From contig OZ025721.1 in the NCBI GenBank assembly GCA_964019335.1, forward strand, positions 418,528 through 482,527: a stretch of DNA of 64,000 bases, in the 5' to 3' direction. Position 1 is the first letter of the stretch. Every line of letters begins with the position of its first letter. The stretch comes from Diplonema japonicum. Its lineage: Eukaryota > Protista > Euglenozoa: Diplonemea. A model generated the notes under the pieces. The model was not told the DNA's origin. It made no database searches and saw nothing but the letters and a program-made list of their open reading frames with translations. The translations under genes and the position numbers were made by a program. Shown one piece after another: positions 40,261 through 52,986 of this stretch.

Positions 40261-41064
40261 ATGGCCATGCTTCTGAAGGGCAGAACAGCATTGATCACAG
40301 GTGCGAGCAGGGGGATCGGGAAGGCCATCGCCGAGGTAATTTTTTTTTTTTTCTTTTTTTTTTTTTTTAAAAAAAAAACCACAATCTCACACACAAATTT
40401 AAAAAAAAAAAAGGCGTACGCAAAGCAAGGCGCGAACGTAATCCTTGTGGGCAGCAAGCTGAGCACTCTGCAGGAGGTTGAGAAGTGCATCAGCGGGGTT
40501 GAGGTCGTGTGCAAGGAGTGCGACCTGAGCGTGTCGGAGAAGGTGGACGAGCTGGTGAAGGAAGTGACAGCCTCGGGAGGCGTGGACATCCTTGTGAACA
40601 ATGCAGGGGTAAAAATAAACGGGAGCGCAACAGAGGGCGACCCTGCTGAGTGGGAGAAGATGATGGCCATCAACGTGAATGCCCCGATGAAGCTGACAAG
40701 AACACTCTCAGAGAAGATGGTGAACCAGAAGTGGGGTGCTGTCATCACCATAGGTTCGGTTTCCGGCATAGAGCCGATGCCGGGCAATGTGGCTGCCTAC
40801 GCTGCTTCAAAATACGCCATTGTGGGCTGGTCGCGTTCCATCTACACCTCCCTGCGGCACCACAACGTCAAGGTGATGATCGTGAACCCTTGCTACACGA
40901 ACACGGACATGGTGGCGGCCGACCCGAACCTCATCGGCAAGCGCATGATACAGCCGGGAGATGTTGCTGATGTCTGCATGCTGCCCTTCTCCCTCTCTTC
41001 GGGATGTGTTCCTGAGGAGATCACTTTGCGGTTGACACTCTCCCCCTTCAAAGATGCAAAGTAA
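40261..41064 (+). CDS. Short-chain dehydrogenase/reductase, copy 1; intron 40336-40413
   Basis: TGASRGIG, NNAG, YAASK. Confidence 0.93.
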   Translation: MAMLLKGRTALITGASRGIGKAIAEVIFFFFFFFFFKKKTTISHTNLKKKKAYAKQGANVILVGSKLSTLQEVEKCISGVEVVCKECDLSVSEKVDELVKEVTASGGVDILVNNAGVKINGSATEGDPAEWEKMMAINVNAPMKLTRTLSEKMVNQKWGAVITIGSVSGIEPMPGNVAAYAASKYAIVGWSRSIYTSLRHHNVKVMIVNPCYTNTDMVAADPNLIGKRMIQPGDVADVCMLPFSLSSGCVPEEITLRLTLSPFKDAK

Positions 41065-41530
41065 AAAAAAAAAAAAAAGAAGAAAAAAAAAAAAAGAAAT
41101 GGTGGAGATGCATTCTTCTTTTTTTTTCTTTTCTTTCCCGTGCGTGGTCTTGCTCTCCCCTCGAAGAAAGAAAAGAAAAGAAAAGAAAAAACAATAGTTC
41201 TGGTTGTTTATTACACTCTTACTTAAATAATTCACGAACGACGAAAAAAAAAAAAAGAAAAAAAACCCCTCATTAGTCGCAACGCCTATCTCTTTCTTTC
41301 CTTTTTTTTTTGTGGAAGGAGTCCTGCCACATGCAGGCCCCCAGGTAAATGTCTCTTTTTTTTTCTCTTTTTTTTTTTCCCTTCCGATTTTCGAAGCAAT
41401 TCGAAGACAGGACGGGCTGCCTAATTTGCCGCAGCAGAAAGAAAAAAAAAAGGAAGAAAAAAACCACAACGAAAAAAAACAAAACAAAAAAAAGTGAGAA
41501 ACAAAAAAAAAAAAAAAAAAGAAGAAAAAA

Positions 41531-42330
41531 ATGTCCATGCTTCTGAAGGGCAGAACAGCTTTGATCACAGGCGCGAGCAGGGGGATCGGGAAGGCCATCG
41601 CCGAGGTACTTTTCTTTCTTTCTTTATTTTTTTTTTTGAAAACCACAATTTTACACAAAAAAAAAAAAAAAAAAAAAAAAAGGTGTACGCAAAGCAAGGC
41701 GCGAACGTAATCCTTGTGGGCAGCAAGCTGAGCACTCTGCAGGAGGTTGAGAAGTGCATCAGCGGGGTTGAGGTCGTGTGCAAGGAGTGCGACCTGAGCG
41801 TGTCGGAGAAGGTGGACGAGCTGGTGAAGGAAGTGACAGCCTCGGGAGGCGTGGACATCCTTGTGAACAATGCAGGGATCTACGCGAAGGGCAACGCAAC
41901 AGAGGGCGACCCTGCTGAGTGGGAGAAGATGATGGCCATCAACGTGAATGCCCCGATGAAGCTGACAAGAACACTCTCAGAGAAGATGGTGAACCAGAAG
42001 TGGGGTGCTGTCATCACCATAGGTTCGGTTTCTGGAATGGAACCTATGTCTGGTGATGCAGCTGCCTACGCCACTTCCAAGCACGCCATTGTGGGCTGGT
42101 CGCGTTCCATCTACACCTCCCTGCGGCACCACAACGTCAAGGTGATGATCGTGAACCCTGGGTTTGTGAACACGAACATGGTGAGCGGCCCGAACGTCCT
42201 CGGCGAGCGTATGATCCAGCCGGGCGATATCGCAGATGTCTGCATGCTGCCCTTCTCCCTCTCCTCGGGATGTGTTCCTGAGGAGATCACTTTGCGGTTG
42301 GCCCTCACACCTTTTGTCGAGCCTAAGTAA
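41531..42330 (+). CDS. Short-chain dehydrogenase/reductase, copy 2; intron 41606-41682
   Basis: TGASRGIG, NNAG, YATSK; tandem paralog of copy 1. Confidence 0.93.
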
Positions 42331-43017: not shown

Positions 43018-43530
43018 ATGAACAACAAGGCAGCCCCGAAAGCAGCAGCACCGACACCCTTCGGCGGGTACGGCATCCTTGGGACAAAGGACGTGAACTT
43101 CGGCCCCACAAAGCTCATCACATCCCCGTCGGTCACCTGTGGTGGAACCAGAGACGAAGGCAAGGGACCTGACTACACGGTGTGGCCGTTATTTCTTTTT
43201 TTCCGCAAACCCGCAAAAGAAAAGAAAAAAAAGAAAGAAAAAAAAAAAAAAAAAATGGCTTTTCGAATTTCCATCAGCATTGACGTGCGTGTTGTGGGGG
43301 CCGGGTGCAAACAATTTTTATCTGCATAACTGTTACGTGCGTCTTTGCCCAGCGTGCTTGACTATCACGAACCAGATATACCAAGTCCTAAAAGCAAAAT
43401 CTATAGCACCCCGAGGCGCAAGCGAACAATTAAGCAACTGTCTAACTTGCGGGTGGGGTTTTTATAATTTATTTACTCCTTTGAATTCTCCCACGCACAG
43501 CTCAAGCAGTACACCTACACCTGCCATTAG
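43018..43530 (+). CDS. Microprotein type A, copy 1 (63 aa); exons 43018-43179 and 43501-43530
   Basis: MNNKAAPKAAAPTPFGGYGILGTKDVNFGPTKLITSPSVTCGGTRDEGKGPDYT|LKQYTYTCH*. Exons match across three copies while the introns differ. Confidence 0.82.
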
Positions 43531-43580
43531 AGGGGCGGGTAGCATAGGAAGAAGGGAAAGGAAGAAGAAGAAGACACGGG

Positions 43581-43613
<33 letters not shown>

Positions 43614-43677
43614 TACCTTCGTAAGTAGAGCATTTACTTCTATTAGTTGACACCAACTGTCGCCGCAGAAAGCAATT

Positions 43678-43719
<42 letters not shown>

Positions 43720-43754
43720 ACATAAAGTAACACTACACTTTGGACAACAAAAAA

Positions 43755-43969
43755 ATGGTCGGCAAGGCAGCCCCGAAAGCAGCAGCACCGACACCCTTCG
43801 GCGGGTACGGCATCCTTGGGACAAAGGACGTGAACTTCGGCCCCACAAAGCTCATCACATCCCCGTCGGTCACCTGTGGTGGAACCAGAGACGAAGGCAA
43901 GGGACCTGACTACACGGTGTGGCCGTTATTTCTTTTTTTTTCTCTTTTTTTTTTTTTTTCCTTTACTGA

Positions 43970-44000
<31 letters not shown>

Positions 44001-44034
44001 ACAGCTCAAGCAGTACACCTACACCTGCCATTAG
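43755..44034 (+). CDS. Microprotein type A, copy 2 (63 aa, starts MVGK); exons 43755-43916 and 44005-44034
   Basis: Identical to A1 from codon 4 onward; GT-AG intron 43917-44004. Confidence 0.82.
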
Positions 44035-44129
44035 AAAAAGGGCGGGTAACACTTTACACTTCATATTTTGTTATTTTTTCCTCTTAGCTTTTTCTCCTCC
44101 ACCCTCAGCCCACACTAGGAGTTGTCAAA

Positions 44130-44517
44130 ATGCCCGCACAGCAGCTTACGCTACACCACATGTGGGGAGGCTGCCCGCATGTCACGTCAGTGTCAGGTAC
44201 CATCGAGCCTGCACAGATGGCACCTGCGACGGTGACGCTGCACCAGGTATGGATTGCACCATCGGCAGCACTGCCACCACCCAACCCAACCACAGGCAAA
44301 GCTGAAGCCCGCCACTGGGAACGGCTTCACCGCAATTTACAAAAACGCGTTGTTCGGGACCACGCAAGAACAGGTATTCTGGGAGGGGAACACAAACAAA
44401 AAAAACAAAACAAAACAAAAAAAAAAACAAAACAAAAAAAAACAGGAATTCGGAACCGGCGGGACAAGCGGCTACAACAACGGAAGGGGAAACTTCTCGG
44501 GCTCCGTGGCGAAATGA
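44130..44517 (+). CDS. Microprotein type B, copy 1 (88 aa); exons 44130-44246, 44296-44373, 44446-44517
   Basis: MPAQQLTLHHMWGGCPHVTSVSGTIEPAQMAPATVTLHQ|AKLKPATGNGFTAIYKNALFGTTQEQ|EFGTGGTSGYNNGRGNFSGSVAK*; CAG|GTAT..ACAG introns. Confidence 0.78.
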
Positions 44518-44740
44518 TAACCCAAACACTACACACAAAATAAATAAATAAAAAAGGAAAATACCCTTTCCCCCCTCTCCCCTCCCCCCCCCCCTCGTAC
44601 ACATTTCATTGTTTTTTTTTTTTTTACCCCAACACCCTGCAACACACTACAAAACACCCCCACCAGGTTTGTATTATAAAAGGCGGGGGGGAGGGGTTTT
44701 TTTTTTTTTTTTAAACGAAAAAAAAAAAAAAACAACAACA

Positions 44741-46204
44741 ATGAAACGTGTGGTGATAAGCGGAGCGGGTGTGGCGGGGGCTTCAGTGGGAATGCATCTT
44801 GCGAAAACAATGGGCGGGAAATGTGAAGTGATCCTGGTGGACCCAAGACCGCCGATGACAGGCACCAGCCAGTACAGCTCCGAGTGCTACCGAAACTTCT
44901 TCATGGACCCCGCAGCTGTTCCCCTAATGGAGCGGTCCATCGAAATCATCGAAGACATCGACTCCCGACACAACATATCCATGAACAGGAAGGGCTATGT
45001 CTTCCTATCAGGGACAAGGGAAGGCACCGAGGCTCTCCTCAACATCGCAGGCCATTCTTCCAAATACGGAGCAGGCGAAGTAAGATGGCACGAAAAGTCA
45101 AACACATACATAAAAAGCCCTGTAAAAGGCCTCACAGACACACAAGGAAACACCTTCGAAGGATTCGACGTCGTACAAGGAAACGAGGAGATACAAAGAA
45201 TATTCCCAAATGTATCGAACGAAGCGAAGTGTATGCTGCATTGTCGAAAAGCGGGATGGCTTGACGCACAAGGGCTCGGATCGGCTTACTTAAGAGAAGC
45301 TCGGCAACACGGGATGCAAACAATACTAGGGGGTATTAAAGAAATCGACACCTCAGGAGGTTCGGTCAGAAGGGTTCTAGTACACAACAAGCAACGAAAC
45401 ACCTCCGAGTGGGTTCAGTGCGACGCATTCGTGAACGCTTCCGGCGCATGGACACAACACATCAACTCTCAACTAGGCGCACCGACGCTCGATCTCAAGA
45501 CAGAGATCATCGCTAAGGTCATTTTAAACGATGTCCACAACATCGTCCCGCAGCAGGAAACACCTTTCATGGTATGGCGCGACCCGGTGACCATCGATTG
45601 GGGTGCTGAAATGTCAGAAGCACTTGCTGAACTAGACGACACGCCCGAAGGCGGCTGGAACAATTGCAAAACATGGATAGACGAACAACCTGGCGGGCAG
45701 CATCTCCGGCCCCTCGGCAACAACAGGGTTCTTCTCATGTGGGAGCATGTTCACCGCCATATTGATATTGATGAAAACCCTGAATTTCCCATTTCTGATG
45801 TTAACGAGTTCTACCCCCAGCTTGCCTTGAAAGGATGTCAAAAAATAATGCCTGGATTGAGTATTTACGACGATGCCTTAGGGAAGGATACCACAGTTGA
45901 TGCGGGGTATTATTCATCTACGTCTGATGGGCGGCCTATCGTTGGGCAGCACGGGCCTTCAAACGCATTTGTTCTCGGTGGGCTCTCGGGTTGGGGGATT
46001 ATGTCTTCTGCTGCGTGTGGGGAGCTGCTTGCTCAGACGATAGCTGGGTCGGTGCCGCTTCCTGCGTACCACACTGCGTTCACTGTTCCTCGTGTTGATC
46101 CGCTTCGGGGGCCCGTTGTGAGCCTGCTTGACCCGCCGGTTGAGGTTGAGAATATTGTTGGTGTTTGCAGAGAACCTGAGAGAATTAAAATGACTGCTAT
46201 TTGA
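44741..46204 (+). CDS. FAD-dependent oxidoreductase (DAO / sarcosine-oxidase-beta-like family)
   Basis: VVISGAGVAG, VNASGAW, GYYSSTSDGRPIVG, SGWGIMSSAACGELLA. Confidence 0.9.
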   Translation: MKRVVISGAGVAGASVGMHLAKTMGGKCEVILVDPRPPMTGTSQYSSECYRNFFMDPAAVPLMERSIEIIEDIDSRHNISMNRKGYVFLSGTREGTEALLNIAGHSSKYGAGEVRWHEKSNTYIKSPVKGLTDTQGNTFEGFDVVQGNEEIQRIFPNVSNEAKCMLHCRKAGWLDAQGLGSAYLREARQHGMQTILGGIKEIDTSGGSVRRVLVHNKQRNTSEWVQCDAFVNASGAWTQHINSQLGAPTLDLKTEIIAKVILNDVHNIVPQQETPFMVWRDPVTIDWGAEMSEALAELDDTPEGGWNNCKTWIDEQPGGQHLRPLGNNRVLLMWEHVHRHIDIDENPEFPISDVNEFYPQLALKGCQKIMPGLSIYDDALGKDTTVDAGYYSSTSDGRPIVGQHGPSNAFVLGGLSGWGIMSSAACGELLAQTIAGSVPLPAYHTAFTVPRVDPLRGPVVSLLDPPVEVENIVGVCREPERIKMTAI

Positions 46205-46407
46205 AGGGGACAAGAAAAAAAAAAAAAAAAAAAAAAAAAAAAGAAAGTTTTTTAAAAAAAAAATGATAACGTCGTGGCCTCGTTCCCCCTCCTCGTCCCG
46301 TCTTTTTTTTCTCTTTTTCCGGTATTTTTTCTAATTCTTTCTGGTTAAACAGTTGGGGTTTTTTTCTTTCTTTCTTTCTTTTCTTTTTTTTTTTTTTTTT
46401 TTTTTTT

Positions 46408-46976
46408 ATTTCACTCTTCGTCATTTTCTTCACTCACTAGGGGCCTCATTATTTAACGCGAAATGGCCATTATTTAACGCGAAACGGCCATTATTTAACG
46501 CGAAATCGCCATTATTTAACTAGTTAAATAATGAGATTTTGCAGTTAAATAATGGCCCTTCAGAGTGAAAAAATGGGTCTTGTCGTGGAAAAAAATGCAC
46601 CCAACCCCTTGAAAAATTTTTTTGGGGTGGGGGTATTTTGACTATTTTTGGCCATCTGAGGCCATTCCAGCCCTTAAAAGTGGGAATAAGTGCCTTACTT
46701 CCCCTTTAAATGCCACGGCGAAATAGCTACCCTGTATTACCTTAGGAAAATCCCCAAAAAGCTGACCTGCGTGAAAAAAAACAGCAGTGAAAGCAGTGAA
46801 GAGTGAGTGACTCAAATGACGAAGAGTGAAATAAAACGACTTACTTGCCGCCAAATGAGCCATTATTTAACACTCGTTACCCGTTTTTTTGCACTCGGGC
46901 CCTGCGGGCCCTCGTGCAAAAAATTCGGGAACTCGAGTTAAATAATGACTCATTATTTGTTGGCAATAAATAGTTA
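46408..46976 (+). mobile_element. Non-autonomous Crypton-like element (asymmetric IR plus terminal hairpin)
   Basis: IR 46408-46438 / 46802-46832 (28/31), hairpin 46845-46966, end AATAAATAGTTA, T-run flanks. Same layout as 5750-6760. Confidence 0.72.
46447..46554. repeat. 21-bp tandem repeats and inverted copies of CATTATTTAAC
   Basis: Three 21-bp units from 46447, a fourth core at 46510, and inverted copies at 46523 and 46544. Confidence 0.9.
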
Positions 46977-47980
46977 TTTTTTTCCCGAAAAGAGAACAAC
47001 AACAAAAAAAAAAAAGAAAAGTTTATTAGTTTTAATTTTTCCAGGAAAATTGTAGCATTTTAATTTTTTTTTTTTCTCGTCCCCCCCCAAACCAGTATTT
47101 TCCCCATTTTTGGGAGTACATTAGCACACGGAGCGTGCGTATCAAAGATGCTGAATGTGCCTGCCTTCTTAGGCAGGGAGATCTTAATATAGGTCTGCGT
47201 TGGACGCTCTCTCCTTCTCCCCCCCCATTCCTCCTAATTAGGTTCTTGATACACATGGTATCAGGGCCTCTTTTTTAAATAAAAGCCCCCCTCTCCGGAG
47301 GGCAACACCCAAGAAGCCTTAGGCTCCTACTCTTGCGTTCCTGTTAAACAAGGGCAATGGAAATATTTTACGGAAATACCTTCTGCTTCTGTGGTGTGGT
47401 TGTTCCTCTTTTGATCCTCCCCCCCCCTTCCCTTCTCTTCAGTAATATTATTTTATGAGGTGAGTTTGAGATTTGACACGGTGGAAAGAAAAGAATGAGA
47501 AAAAAAAAGAAGGAAAAAAGAAGGGGCAACATAAAAAATAAATCGATTCCATGTGATAGGAAAAGATGTGATTGTTTTCCCTCTTTTTCTAAATTGTCAT
47601 TTATCGCTTCTTTTTTAACTGAGATCTTAACCCGGTATTTTGAAACTTTGGCTGTGTTTTTCTTTCTTTCTTCATTTCAGCAGTTAACTACTTTTTGTTT
47701 TACCATTTTTTGTTTCAGGAGCGACTGCTGAACATGAGGAAAAAGAGAGTCCATGGTATTATCTTTTTATTTTCTTCTCAATCCATCGTGTGCATCTTCA
47801 GTTGGTGTTGCATGAAGAACTTTTATTGAACTTGAAACCACTAAATTTGAACGAGAAATCTTCATTCCCCCTCACCCACTCAATTATTATTATTCAACGG
47901 AACCTTTTGAAAAACCAAGCATCAAAAGCTTGGATGTCTAGAAGTGGGAAAGCAGTGGAATTTAAGAAGGAAAAAAAAAA

Positions 47981-48052
47981 CATCCGAGGCAGGACTCGAA
48001 CCTGCAACCGCCTGATTCGTAGTCAGGCGCTCTTCCATTGAGCCACACGGAC
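47981..48052 (-). tRNA. tRNA-Arg(ACG)
   Basis: Cloverleaf with CCTGA-CT-ACG-AA-TCAGG arm, GGTTCGAGTCC T-arm and a T10 terminator; U6.U67 mismatch in the acceptor stem. Confidence 0.93.
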
Positions 48053-48859
48053 TTACAATTTTCGTGGGCGTGATGCAGACGCGTGGATGTCGCGAAATTA
48101 CTTCGTTTAGTGAATCTAAATCTTGATCCGAAGTTCTATTAATCGACTCCCACAGGCAGGTTTTCAAACTTTTTCTTCCTCTTTTCATTGCACCTGGGCT
48201 AAGAGTTCTTGTTGTACATAAGAACAAATGGAAATACAAAAGAAATAAGAACAAATGGGGGAAACCGCATTTCTCTCGGGGTGCCGCCTTAAGTCATTCT
48301 TCTTCCTTCGTTACAAGACAATACCAGTACGTATTTCCCCTGAGTATGTGAATGCATGTTTATTTCTCCATTCCCTTTCCGACTTACCTTTTTTTCTCGT
48401 TATTTTTAATCCCTTGAAATTGAAGTAAAAAAGAATTTTTTTTTTTTTTGAGAAGCACCCCCCTCACCCCCTTTCTGTCTCTTTCATGTTACCCAGTCGT
48501 GACATGGCCTTAAAACCCCCCACCCACCCCTTCCCCCGTTCCTTCGTGGACCCTTCCCTTCCCTTTCATAGGAAGGTGTCGCCTGACGCCAGCCCTCGAG
48601 AAGATAGGGGAAAGAAGAAGGGGGGGAAAAGGAAGAAGGAAAAGGAACGAGAAAGCAAAAATATACATTTTTTTTTTTGTGAAAGGCACAGTTTGCTACT
48701 CGCCTTCTCTCCCTCTCTGGTTGTAGTGAAACAAAAAAAAAATCCTGGTACATTTCTTTTCTTTTCTTTTCCTTTTTCGTTTTTCCTTTTGTTTTCCTTT
48801 CCACCCTGACAATTTTCTTAAAGGAGAGTTGACAAAAAAAAAAAGAAAAAAAGAAACAA

Positions 48860-49226
48860 ATGCCCGCACAGCAGCTTACGCTACACCACATGTGGGGAGG
48901 CTGCCCGCATGTCACGTCAGTGTCAGGTACCATCGAGCCTGCACAGATGGCACCTGCGACGGTGACGCTGCACCAGGTATGGATTGCACCATCGGCAGCA
49001 CTGCCACCACCCAACCCAACCACAGGCAAAGCTGAAGCCCGCCACTGGGAACGGCTTCACCGCAATTTACAAAAACGCGTTGTTCGGGACCACGCAAGAA
49101 CAGGTATTCGGGAGGGGAACACAAACAAAAAAAACAAAACAAAAAAAAAAACAGGAATTCGGAACCGGCGGGACAAGCGGCTACAACAACGGAAGGGGAA
49201 ACTTCTCGGGCTCCGTGGCGAAATGA
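48860..49226 (+). CDS. Microprotein type B, copy 2 (88 aa)
   Basis: Exons and intron 1 match B1; intron 2 (49104-49154) is shorter. Confidence 0.78.
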
Positions 49227-49285
49227 TAGGGGAAGAAAAAGGGCAGTTTAACACATTACACCAGAAACCTCCTTACACTACTCTC

Positions 49286-49328
<43 letters not shown>

Positions 49329-49419
49329 CGATCCCCTTTTTGTGTTTCTGTTTCTTGTTTGTTTATGGACCTCTCCTCTAGACCTGTACACTAAAAAAAA
49401 GAAAAGAAAAAAAAAAAAA

Positions 49420-49724
49420 ATGGGTGACTTCAACCCCAACGCTGCACAGAAGGCCGACCCCAACTGCCCAACCTTCTTGAGTATGGTTTTTCTTTCTTTT
49501 TTTTTTCTTTTTTCCATCCCCCCAACACAGAGGTTAAACCGCACTTGTTGACCTCCGCAAAGCTGAACCCCGGTAGTTTTACTTTGCATGCTGCATCCAT
49601 TGCTTCCCCTGCCAAGTGGGGCAAAATCAGCATGAGCATGAGCAACGGGAAGTCACAGAGCGGCATGGGCAGCATTGGGAGCACTGCGGTGAGCAAACCG
49701 GACCTCCCCGACTCCGGCTGGTAA
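49420..49724 (+). CDS. Microprotein type C, copy 1 (84 aa); intron 49481-49530
   Basis: MGDFNPNAAQKADPNCPTFLKVKPHLLTSAKLNPGSFTLHAASIASPAKWGKISMSMSNGKSQSGMGSIGSTAVSKPDLPDSGW*. Confidence 0.85.
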
Positions 49725-49926
49725 AGAGAGTGCAAAAGCAAACACAACACACTGCTGTCTACACCTTCCTTCTTTTTTTTTTTTTTTTTTTACACACCGA
49801 TCCAGTAACTTCTAATATTTTTCTCCTTTCGCAAACCCGTTTCGCAAAAAAACTGAGAAGCTTCAAAAAAGTCTTTTTTTTTTGTTTTGTTACACTAAGA
49901 GAACGAAAAAAAAAAAAAAAAAAAAA

Positions 49927-50218
49927 ATGGGTGACTTCAACCCCAACGCCGCACAGAAGGCCGACCCCAACTGCCCAACCTTCTTGAGTATGATTTTTTT
50001 TTCCCCTTCCAATCCCCAACACAGAGGTTAAACCGCACTTGTTGACCTCTGCAAAGCTGAACCCCGGTAGTTTTACTTTGCATGCTGCATCCATTGCTTC
50101 CCCTGCCAAGTGGGGCAAAATCAGCATGAGCATGAGCAACGGGAAGTCACAGAGCGGCATGGGCAGCATTGGGAGCACTGCGGTGAGCAAACCGGACCTC
50201 CCCGACTCCGGCTGGTAA
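49927..50218 (+). CDS. Microprotein type C, copy 2 (84 aa); intron 49988-50024
   Basis: Same protein as C1; the two exon differences seen (GCT/GCC, TCC/TCT) are synonymous. Confidence 0.85.
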
Positions 50219-50379
50219 AAAAAAAAAAAGAAGAAAAAACAACGACAAACAAAAACAAAAAAAAAAAAAAATACACAAACCCCTTTTACACTTTCCTTGT
50301 TGTTTTTGGCATCGTAAAAAAAAAGTTTTTTTTTTCTCCCCAATCTTTTTTCAGTGTTACACTCAAACCCTTTACTAAG

Positions 50380-50669
50380 ATGTCCGACTTCGCATGGGGT
50401 GGTGCTGAGCAGGCGACTGGTAGCTCCATCATCAAGGCTCATCACGCTGGCAACGACACTACCAACTGCCCCACATTTTCTGGTATGGAAGAAGGGGGGG
50501 AAAGTACTTGCTCACAGGCATTAGGCCGCATGCGCTGACTGCTGCTTCTGTGATTCCCGCCTCTGCGACTCTTAAGCAAGCAAAGATCACCCAACCTGCT
50601 TACTTATCGTCCGTGAACGTGGGGATGAGCAATGGGACTAAGAAGACGTTTGGACCGTTCCACAACTGA
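50380..50669 (+). CDS. Microprotein type D (84 aa), divergent paralog of C; intron 50483-50517
   Basis: MSDFAWGGAEQATGSSIIKAHHAGNDTTNCPTFSGIRPHALTAASVIPASATLKQAKITQPAYLSSVNVGMSNGTKKTFGPFHN*. Phase-1 intron at the same position as in C. Confidence 0.85.
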
Positions 50670-50955
50670 AGAAGAAAAAAAAAGTACAAAACACACTATC
50701 GAACAAAACACAAAAAGGGAAAAAAAAAAAAAAAAAAAGACTTTTTTGAAGTTTAGAGTCCTGGTTACACTACACCATTTCTTTTTTTTTTTATTTTTTT
50801 TTTTATTCGTTTGAAAAAAAGATTTTTTTTTTTTTCTTTTTTTTTTTTTTTTGCAGCCAATGCCGAAAAAGAAGAAGAAGGAGAAACCCCCCCTCTCCCC
50901 TCCAAGGACTTTACACTAAAACACACAACAAACAAAAAAGAAGAGGGGGAAAAAA

Positions 50956-51129
50956 ATGAACAACAAGGCAGCCCCGAAAGCAGCAGCACCGACACCCTTC
51001 GGCGGGTACGGCATCCTTGGGACAAAGGACGTGAACTTCGGCCCCACAAAGCTCATCACATCCCCGTCGGTCACCTGTGGTGGAACCAGAGACGAAGGCA
51101 AGGGACCTGACTACACGGTGTGGCCGTTA

Positions 51130-51169
<40 letters not shown>

Positions 51170-51241
51170 CCTTTTTTTACTGATTTTTTTTTTTTTTTTT
51201 TTACATAACAGCTCAAGCAGTACACCTACACCTGCCATTAG
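50956..51241 (+). CDS. Microprotein type A, copy 3 (63 aa); intron 51118-51211
   Basis: Exons match A1. Confidence 0.82.
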
Positions 51242-51435
51242 AAAAAGGGGTATTTCTCTTTTTTTTTTTTTTTTTTTTCCGGCCTTGAAGCCTCACCAGT
51301 TTCATTTTTACGTACACGATTCCTATCTTTTCTGTTCCCCTTTTTATTTCTTCCTTGCAACAATTTTCCTTTTTGTATCTCAGTTAAGGGAAGTTCTTTC
51401 GTGGGGAGGGAGGGGGAGGAAAAAACAAAATAGAG

Positions 51436-52248: not shown

Positions 52249-52330
52249 CGCTGACGGCAGGGTTTGAACCTACGCGGGCAGGGCCCAATGGATTTCAAGT
52301 CCACCTCCGTAACCACTTGGATACATCAGC
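52249..52330 (-). tRNA. tRNA-Ser(TGA), copy 1
   Basis: 82 nt; GTGGA-CT-TGA-AA-TCCAT arm; long variable arm; T-run terminator. Confidence 0.95.
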
Positions 52331-52425: not shown

Positions 52426-52507
52426 GCTGATGTATCCAAGTGGTTACGGAGGTGGACTTGAAATCCATTGGGCCCTGCCCGCGTAGGTTCAAACCCTGCC
52501 GTCAGCG
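52426..52507 (+). tRNA. tRNA-Ser(TGA), copy 2 (identical, divergent orientation)
   Basis: Exact reverse complement of copy 1. Confidence 0.95.
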
Positions 52508-52914: not shown

Positions 52915-52986
52915 TCCTCGGTAGTATAGAGGTCAGTATATCCGCCTGTCACGCGGATGACCCGGGTTCAATTCCCGGCCGGGGAA
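52915..52986 (+). tRNA. tRNA-Asp(GTC), with A at the discriminator position
   Basis: TCCTCGG/CCGGGGA acceptor stem, TCCGC-CT-GTC-AC-GCGGA arm, GGTTCAATTCC T-arm, T6 terminator. Confidence 0.92.

Follow-up and report, generated by a model that had tools for sequence, protein, structure and literature searches.

The window, the whole 64,000-nucleotide stretch of the Diplonema japonicum genome that was analysed, contains eight genes for microproteins of 6-9 kDa that fall into four types, A, B, C and D. Along the plus strand they are arranged as A1, A2 and B1, followed by a FAD oxidoreductase, a repeat-ended element and a tRNA-Arg, and then by B2, C1, C2, D and A3. All eight models (A1-A3, B1-B2, C1-C2 and D) were reproduced exactly, with the gene order, GT..AG introns and spliced product lengths (63, 88, 84 and 84 amino acids for A, B, C and D, respectively) that a preliminary description of the locus had given.

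Gene A1 (43018..43530, plus strand, 63 aa) has exons at 43018-43179 and 43501-43530 that are 98-100% identical to those of A2 and A3, and a GT..AG intron of 321 nt that cannot be aligned. The 63-aa product of A2 (43755..44034, plus strand; exons 43755-43916 and 44005-44034, intron 88 nt) begins with MVGK, and the loose end of an X2 transcript contig corresponds to the A2-specific 5' UTR and start. The two B genes, each encoding 88 aa on the plus strand, have identical coding sequences: B1 (44130..44517) has exons at 44130-44246, 44296-44373 and 44446-44517 and introns of 49 and 72 nt, and B2 (48860..49226) has exons at 48860-48976, 49026-49103 and 49155-49226 and introns of 49 and 51 nt. Genes C1 (49420..49724; exons 49420-49480 and 49531-49724) and C2 (49927..50218; exons 49927-49987 and 50025-50218) encode 84 aa on the plus strand and have phase 1 introns of 50 and 37 nt, respectively. 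The mRNA of gene D (50354..50704, plus strand, 84 aa) has a spliced-leader (SL) acceptor just before 50354, coding exons at 50380-50482 and 50518-50669, and a 35 nt intron that shares both its position and its phase 1 with the C intron, as previously proposed. The A3 mRNA (50906..51241, plus strand, 63 aa) has an SL acceptor just before 50906, coding exons at 50956-51117 and 51212-51241, and an intron of 94 nt.

Between B1 and B2 lie the DAO-family FAD oxidoreductase (44741-46204), the repeat-ended element (about 46400-46980) and a tRNA-Arg(ACG) on the minus strand (47981-48052). None of the neighbours considered (the FAD oxidoreductase, two SDR genes and a zinc-ribbon protein) recurs at the paralog loci; therefore, a functional gene cluster was not found. 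Genes that are neighbours in polycistronic euglenozoan genomes need not have a common function.

The two introns of B and those of C and D are missing from transcript contigs of public runs. For B2, X1 record 1 and X4 record 14 read from exon 1 through exon 2 to exon 3 with neither intron present. X4 record 15 carries C2 exon 1 (49937-49987) joined straight to exon 2, and the match of one X1 contig to C1 begins exactly at the acceptor, 49531. At gene D, X1 record 4 and X2 record 9 have position 50354 directly behind the diplonemid spliced leader (...AGCTACAGTTTCTGTACTTTATT) and skip 50482-50516. For A3, X1 and X2 contigs show the same leader (...AGCTACAGTTTCTGTACTTTATT) joined at 50906. In X2, X4 and X11, contigs lose their match to A3 exactly at the donor, 51117, with 34-38 unplaced letters beyond; they thus show A up to the donor and not the splice joint itself. 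Genome-wide, there are 154 copies of the leader with GT directly behind it, versus 0 in a reversed control. The introns of the cluster are 35-94 nt long apart from the one of 321 nt, and their donors are mostly GTATG. They agree with the published features of D. japonicum introns, which have a median length of 41 nt, a GTATG donor and an A-rich 3' tract (PMC12621601). No AUG occurs between the mapped SL site and the start codon of either D or A3, so that the start is the first AUG. The eight loci are transcribed nuclear genes of a diplonemid. Their transcripts are SL-capped (the leader was mapped at D and A3), lose short GT-AG introns by cis-splicing and are each translated into a cytosolic protein, beginning at the first AUG.

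Exons of the tandem copies are 98-100% identical, and the flanks and several introns do not align, so the reported drop in conservation outside the exons is present. C1 and C2 differ at two nucleotides, both changes being synonymous, also as described. Comparisons with transcripts from other runs gave a similar picture: 15 of 19 coding differences are synonymous, as are 11 of the 13 differences listed between C1 and an X4 contig. Older paralogs were identified on five other contigs, with synonymous change saturated and dN/dS of 0.01-0.2. The lowest value (0.012) is that of B1 against the B gene of contig C5, where 47 of 63 synonymous sites differ versus 9 of 201 non-synonymous sites; for the diverged copies of C, D and A, dN/dS is 0.06, 0.13 and 0.2, respectively. 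In total the genome encodes 11 genes of the B/C/D types and five of the A type, including an additional three-copy B array on contig C10. These rates point to strong purifying selection over the whole length of the proteins, in ancient paralogs and in orthologs from other diplonemids. High conservation is also possible for small soluble ligand-binding or regulatory proteins. Spliced and SL-joined contigs, low dN/dS and repeated copies bear out the proposal that these are genuine, spliced, dosage-amplified protein-coding genes.

The four types were originally described as related. We assign B, C and D to one family because profile comparison (hhalign E=2e-11 for C-D, 4e-5 for B-C and 7e-4 for B-D) and common intron positions agree; the first B intron lies where the intron of a D paralog on genomic contig C1 is found. 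The family has a common core of about 34 residues with an invariant Cys-Pro and a T-L-[H/K] motif, and C and D also have Pro-His. All members of B, C and D, and all orthologs, that cover the site have the pattern [N/D/Q/G]-C-P-x-[F/V]. The claim of a fourth related type fails for A, which showed no significant similarity to B, C or D by hhalign (E 0.13-0.69) and has its intron elsewhere. A proteins have two conserved Cys and no CP, and the A' and A'' paralogs share the position of the last intron with the A genes. A single A+B+C+D superfamily was considered and is not supported by the hhalign values for A. The A type is tied to B/C/D by adjacency only, at two loci; on contig C26, A' precedes C' by about 1.2 kb.

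Across diplonemids the proteins have changed very little. Orthologs were identified in Diplonema ambulator and in several Tara Oceans metatranscriptome samples, where many of them start with translated leader sequence; the B/C/D family thus occurs in open-ocean metatranscriptomes. Database searches recovered no homologs outside diplonemids, and a word-indexed search with A exon 1 gave no match. An exhaustive phmmer search with C exon 2 returned one true ortholog, a bacterial T9SS repeat protein (P0003) and a further repeat protein (P0004). The latter two were rejected as homologs and judged to be compositional or beta-strand-pattern matches. EukProt, the MERC marine catalogue and one ENA entry account for all database matches, none of which is an NCBI-sourced protein. 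Literature searches found neither a description of these proteins nor the molecular composition of euglenozoan extrusomes. Annotation of the D. japonicum genome has not yet been made (PMC13598402). The locus adds two conserved, amplified and transcribed families of tiny proteins, whose genes should enter annotation and proteomic search databases.

Queries for the sequence and fold searches were single exons or, in place of the full-length products, the database proteins P0005 and P0016; the spliced, joined sequences were used for translation, dN/dS and hhalign. Pfam gave no match at E<=10 for any exon or for four full-length orthologs, PDB sequences gave none at E<=10 for the B/C/D profile or for A, Foldseek with a D-type model found nothing below E=2.9, and the ESM Atlas provided no usable lead. 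The earlier statement that no family is recognised stands across these four resources. AF2 models reach a pLDDT of 62 for the D type, with a C-terminal beta-hairpin as the sole fold, and of 52 for the C type; the lack of a fold is weak evidence because the input alignments were shallow (11-13 rows). As reported, the proteins are rich in G/S/T/A/P (about 50%) and lack a hydrophobic segment that could serve as signal peptide or TM helix (no member exceeds a 15-residue Kyte-Doolittle value of 1.2). The tail of B is rich in G/Y/N/S, charged residues make up 9-17%, the pI is mildly basic (7.8-9.6), and, relative to the charge-hydropathy boundary, mean hydropathy places the proteins on the ordered side. 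The proposed beta-rich character survives as some beta tendency, seen in the AF2 hairpin and in a weak and repeated resemblance between the C core and an ~82-aa repeat from a beta-rich bacterial T9SS surface protein. The pentapeptide-like part of that proposal does not. B, C and D have a few L-x-x-A-x-L-like spacings in common with pentapeptide-repeat beta-solenoids (PF00805 clan), but they lack tandem five-residue periodicity and a Pfam match at E<=10, and the AF2 models contain no solenoid.

We tentatively suggest that the A-D microproteins serve an abundant assembly of the cytoplasm as structural subunits under tight constraint. Stoichiometric structural subunits appear most likely because the proteins have no fold of their own and few charges, because nearly every residue is constrained, and because gene dosage is amplified; abundance is here taken from copy number and contig depths only, and the depths cannot rank genes. 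Within the assembly, the proteins would lie against partners in an extended or beta conformation, and the most plausible partner would be a scaffold of the cytoskeleton, for example the microtubule corset, the axoneme or the fibres of the feeding apparatus. Self-association may be a less likely sub-case. Microtubule inner proteins and extended 'staple' subunits are similar in being small, without an autonomous fold and constrained along most of their length, and they become ordered only on their scaffold, a mode that we think may be the most likely one for A-D; unlike them, A-D have no homology to any solved chain. If they are structural, the A-D families would offer a way into a cellular structure specific to the lineage. 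In an unlikely, more specific version, A, B, C and D would assemble with one another in the cytoplasm into a polymer or lattice that is rich in beta structure and specific to diplonemids. With its 6-9 kDa subunits, it would represent a new class of cytoskeletal filament. Such a polymer might be located in the fibrous material of the feeding apparatus, in a corset-associated layer or, via non-classical delivery, in extrusomes.

Also unlikely is a role of B, C and D as small soluble ligand or redox proteins, in which the Cys-Pro, with His nearby, would act as a heme-regulatory CP, metal or thiol site, for example in heme buffering or trafficking. Heme regulatory motifs are defined by a CP dipeptide followed by hydrophobic residues and lie in disordered segments. 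The invariant Cys-Pro of all B/C/D members and of orthologs covering the site, with a hydrophobic residue shortly after it in an unstructured segment, fits this description, and C and D also have an invariant Pro-His. However, the resemblance is at the level of the motif, with no family relationship, constraint in B/C/D spans the whole protein far beyond it, and CP is absent from A. CP is a motif and not a family, and therefore this function is not established.

We consider it rather improbable that A-D are intrinsically disordered cytosolic stress protectants or phase-separating hydrophilins. Low AF2 confidence, the ~50% of G/S/T/A/P and the composition of the B tail would suit such proteins, but these usually evolve fast, whereas dN/dS here falls to 0.01 with saturated dS; the few charged residues and the position relative to the charge-hydropathy boundary also speak against this reading. 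Comparably improbable is the proposal that they are lineage-specific accessory subunits of a giant non-cytoskeletal complex (the respiratory chain, the mitoribosome or the cytosolic ribosome). Their size, basic pI, extended predicted shape and tight constraint are all suitable, and many extra subunits are known from diplonemid complexes (PMC10325924). Against this, no chain of a solved structure was matched and a targeting sequence is not evident. Tandem amplification of several types to 2-3 copies, as found here, is moreover unusual for accessory subunits.

R-body Reb proteins and the ribbon proteins of cryptophyte ejectisomes, which are small, related subunits that are encoded together and polymerise into an extrusive ribbon, are the closest precedent for an extrusive polymer; A-D, known here from genes and transcripts, differ in having no Pfam match, and neither the B/C/D profile nor an A exon has a PDB sequence match. 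The idea that A-D co-polymerise into a beta-rich hetero-polymer forming the shaft of the euglenozoan tubular extrusome, a candidate of the preliminary description, draws on the clustered, amplified small paralog types, on the beta tendencies noted above and on the production of tubular extrusomes by D. japonicum (PMC5845003), but is very improbable: these organelles have a thick bounding membrane and are confined to the sessile and swimming stages, which are starved (PMC5845003), the absence of a signal peptide and TM segment in proteins whose start codon follows from the SL site argues against cargo of membrane-bound extrusomes, and homologs were not found beyond diplonemids, yet extrusomes are a trait of Euglenozoa overall.

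The Pfam models for R-body Reb, KMP-11 and sperm-tail PG-rich repeats were not matched at E<=10. KMP-11 (kinetoplastid membrane protein-11, PF03037) is a helical, euglenozoan-restricted protein of about 11 kDa that is associated with the cytoskeleton and flagellum and encoded by tandem copies in polycistronic arrays. A-D differ from it in having no Pfam similarity (E<=10), in being predicted non-helical and in having cis-spliced genes, and resemble it in that dosage is raised through gene copy number.

The eight genes at 43018-51241 are real, expressed, conserved and dosage-amplified, and their products are cytosolic microproteins of two undescribed families. Starts, donors, acceptors and stops were located by pattern in the window and the exons joined in a local script, which recovered exactly all eight models of the preliminary description, each on the plus strand. 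The A type (63 aa) is encoded by A1 (exons 43018-43179 and 43501-43530), A2 (43755-43916 and 44005-44034) and A3 (50956-51117 and 51212-51241), and the B type (88 aa) by B1 (44130-44246, 44296-44373 and 44446-44517) and B2 (48860-48976, 49026-49103 and 49155-49226). The C type (84 aa) is encoded by gene C1 (49420-49480 and 49531-49724) and C2 (49927-49987 and 50025-50218), and D (50380-50482 and 50518-50669) encodes a further protein of 84 aa. The introns are GT..AG throughout and 35-94 nt long, except that of A1 (321 nt). As had been noted from the sequence, conservation drops outside the exons: copies of the same type share 98-100% exon identity, whereas no alignment is seen in the 150-nt flanks, in the A1 intron or in portions of other introns. 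The two differences between genes C1 and C2 are both synonymous, again as described.

Transcript evidence came from four public sequencing runs, used as assembled contigs rather than raw reads and compared with the region 48700-51400, which includes all four types. Run X11 is a recorded metatranscriptome and the other three (X1, X2 and X4) are presumed to be RNA; contig depth is unsuited to ranking expression. For B2, X1 record 1 and X4 record 14 span the three exons in contiguous record coordinates, so both B introns are absent from them. The D intron is skipped in X1 record 4 and X2 record 9. Exon 1 of C is joined straight to exon 2 in X4 record 15, and an X1 contig match starts exactly at acceptor 49531. 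For A3, contigs of X2, X4 and X11 match exactly up to donor 51117 and no further, leaving 34-38 letters, a length that exon 2 and a few extra bases would roughly account for. The predicted removal of GT-AG introns thus holds for B2 (both introns), C and D, and A-type splicing in RNA is supported by the stop at the donor, the joint itself not being displayed. The cluster introns fit those published for D. japonicum (98% canonical, median 41 nt, donor (G)/GTATG and a 3' tract that is unusually rich in A; PMC12621601).

The contigs have loose 5' ends with the sequence ...AGCTACAGTTTCTGTACTTTATT, which are attached at 50354 (D) and 50906 (A3). With GT directly after it, this string has 154 occurrences in the genome and none in a reversed control, so we identify it as the spliced leader. 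The 5' UTRs of D and A3 both lack an upstream AUG, which fixes the start codons.

We searched the entire assembly (62.5 Mb, 132 contigs) one exon at a time and modelled paralogs by script. C-type and A-type paralogs lie 1.2 kb from each other on contig C26, a second outlying A-type paralog is on contig C67, a D-type paralog on contig C1 (locus L009, 700523-700810), a B-type paralog on contig C5 and a three-copy B-type array on contig C10 (L017-L019, 457500-458540). The genome totals are 11 B/C/D-type and five A-type genes. Between paralog pairs, synonymous sites are saturated and the proteins conserved: dN/dS is 0.012 for B1 and the B gene on contig C5 (47/63 synonymous and 9/201 non-synonymous differences), 0.06 for gene C1 and the C gene on contig C26, 0.13 for D and its paralog on contig C1, and 0.2 for A1 and the A gene on contig C67. 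Coding differences in transcript contigs of other runs are synonymous in 15 of 19 cases. Transcripts, low dN/dS and multiple near-identical copies bear out the earlier view of these as genuine, dosage-amplified coding genes. This genome, in common with those of other euglenozoans, is assumed from kinetoplastid biology to have little gene-specific transcriptional control.

The Diplonema ambulator ortholog P0005 (EukProt EP01059) is 88% and 80% identical to the two D exons of the window, and two EukProt gene models are further orthologs, as are sequences from several metatranscriptome samples of Tara Oceans. A search that relies on shared words turned up no A-type relative beyond the D. japonicum genome. 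'MGFLYFI', a translation of the leader, opens many of the Tara ortholog sequences; such N-termini (translated spliced leader plus 5' UTR) occur on the Tara/MERC proteins P0001, P0007, P0009, P0012 and P0016. Diplonemid catalogue proteins are thus N-terminally over-extended, and 'MGFLYFI' could mark diplonemid transcripts within metatranscriptomes.

The four types had been described as related. Local profile-profile comparison upholds the kinship of B, C and D (C-D, E=2e-11; B-C, 4e-5; B-D, 7e-4) and not that of A, whose comparisons with B, C or D gave E-values of 0.13-0.69 over only 1-8 aligned columns. Intron positions are consistent with this grouping. An intron in phase 1 after NCPTF[L/S] is common to C and D, as previously reported. 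The D paralog on contig C1 lacks it and has a phase-0 intron after TLKQ, the exact site of the first B intron (after TLHQ), and the B genes on contig C10 are without B intron 2. Every A gene is interrupted by an intron in phase 0 after GPD[Y/F]x, and the two outlying ones have one extra, first intron. Profiles and introns thus indicate two families, and A is linked to B/C/D by adjacency only, at two loci (the window and contig C26). The loci on contigs C1 and C10, with contig C26 435780-436010, offer a compact case of intron gain or loss among paralogs.

The microproteins (6.1-9.2 kDa, pI 7.8-9.6) are rich in G/S/T/A/P, as had been remarked, at about 50%, with charged residues at only 9-17%. 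Their maximum 15-residue hydropathy is <=1.2 and a hydrophobic segment is absent, in agreement with the predicted lack of a signal peptide or TM helix. A Cys-Pro is kept without exception in types B, C and D and in every ortholog, and four further elements (Pro-His, L-T, A and T-L) are invariant within C and D. AlphaFold2 models, resting on shallow alignments, gave for P0005 (D-type) a pLDDT of 62 with a C-terminal beta-hairpin (residues 64-83) as the sole structure, and for P0016 (C-type) a pLDDT of 52 and no secondary structure. The suggested resemblance to pentapeptide solenoids fails. No family had been recognised, and queries with single exons, ortholog proteins, a B/C/D profile or a D-type model found no match in Pfam, PDB sequences, Foldseek or the ESM Atlas; the exhaustive protein search used a single C exon, not a profile. 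In a bacterial T9SS surface protein, every one of the ~82-residue repeats aligned weakly with the C core (26-39% identity), which we read as a common beta-strand pattern rather than homology. Literature searches returned no description of these microproteins. Annotation of the published D. japonicum YPF1604 assembly (62.3 Mb in 118 pseudomolecules) is pending (PMC13598402), and the genome is so far without public annotation.

Whole-length constraint, no predicted fold of their own, low charge and copies amplified in a genome of presumably little gene-specific transcriptional control are features expected of stoichiometric structural subunits, which would become ordered upon contact with partners; we tentatively favour this role for the microproteins. 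Accessory subunits bound to a scaffold are likelier than a self-polymer, and the A-D hetero-polymer proposed earlier is possible. A ligand- or redox-binding role through the invariant Cys-Pro, which resembles a heme regulatory motif, is an unlikely candidate at the level of the motif. A role as disordered stress-protectants agrees with the composition and conflicts with the very low dN/dS; it is improbable, as is membership, as accessory subunits, of another giant complex. The tubular extrusome is a very unlikely destination, since in D. japonicum this organelle has a thick enclosing membrane and forms only in starved stages (PMC5845003), and the proteins have no classical signal for entering the secretory pathway.

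Almost every large ORF in the window is on one strand, and the genes are set apart by long tracts of poly(T) and poly(A). Between B1 and B2 are three features unrelated to the microprotein genes: an FAD oxidoreductase of the DAO family (44741-46204; Pfam PF01266, E=8e-38), tRNA-Arg(ACG) (47981-48052, minus) and, in the gap separating these, a repeat-ended element (~46400-46980) in which the 12-mer CCATTATTTAAC forms arrays close to one end and recurs as inverted copies (GTTAAATAATG...) inside and near the opposite end. Two tandem short-chain dehydrogenase (SDR) genes (40261-41064 and 41494-42330; 89% protein identity over 211 residues) lie directly upstream of the cluster. Neither the FAD oxidoreductase nor the SDR genes recur at the paralog loci, and thus no functional gene cluster with the microproteins was seen. 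On contig C26, an Ala/Pro-rich protein gene lies on the reverse strand (~434950-435450) between the A- and C-type paralogs; read by eye, its product has a putative C-terminal twin Cx9C motif (CHCH, Mix17/CHCHD2-like) and a His5 run. Just downstream of the window cluster are a divergent tRNA-Ser(TGA) pair (52249-52330, minus; 52426-52507, plus) and tRNA-Asp(GTC) (52915-52986, plus), so that, counting tRNA-Arg, four tRNA genes fall within 5 kb of this array of protein genes that run in one direction.

In the window there are 13 copies of the heptamer TTACACT (4.5 expected), with eight sites inside the microprotein cluster (plus strand; 42981, 44054, 49273, 49890, 50286, 50357, 50765 and 50911). 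In D and A3 it begins 3-5 nt past the mapped spliced-leader junction. On other contigs, TTACAC-like strings lie ahead of most start codons of the paralogs, and a few TTACACT sites (34947, 41211 and 57331) are upstream of unrelated genes. It is possibly a 5'-UTR or trans-splicing-associated element.
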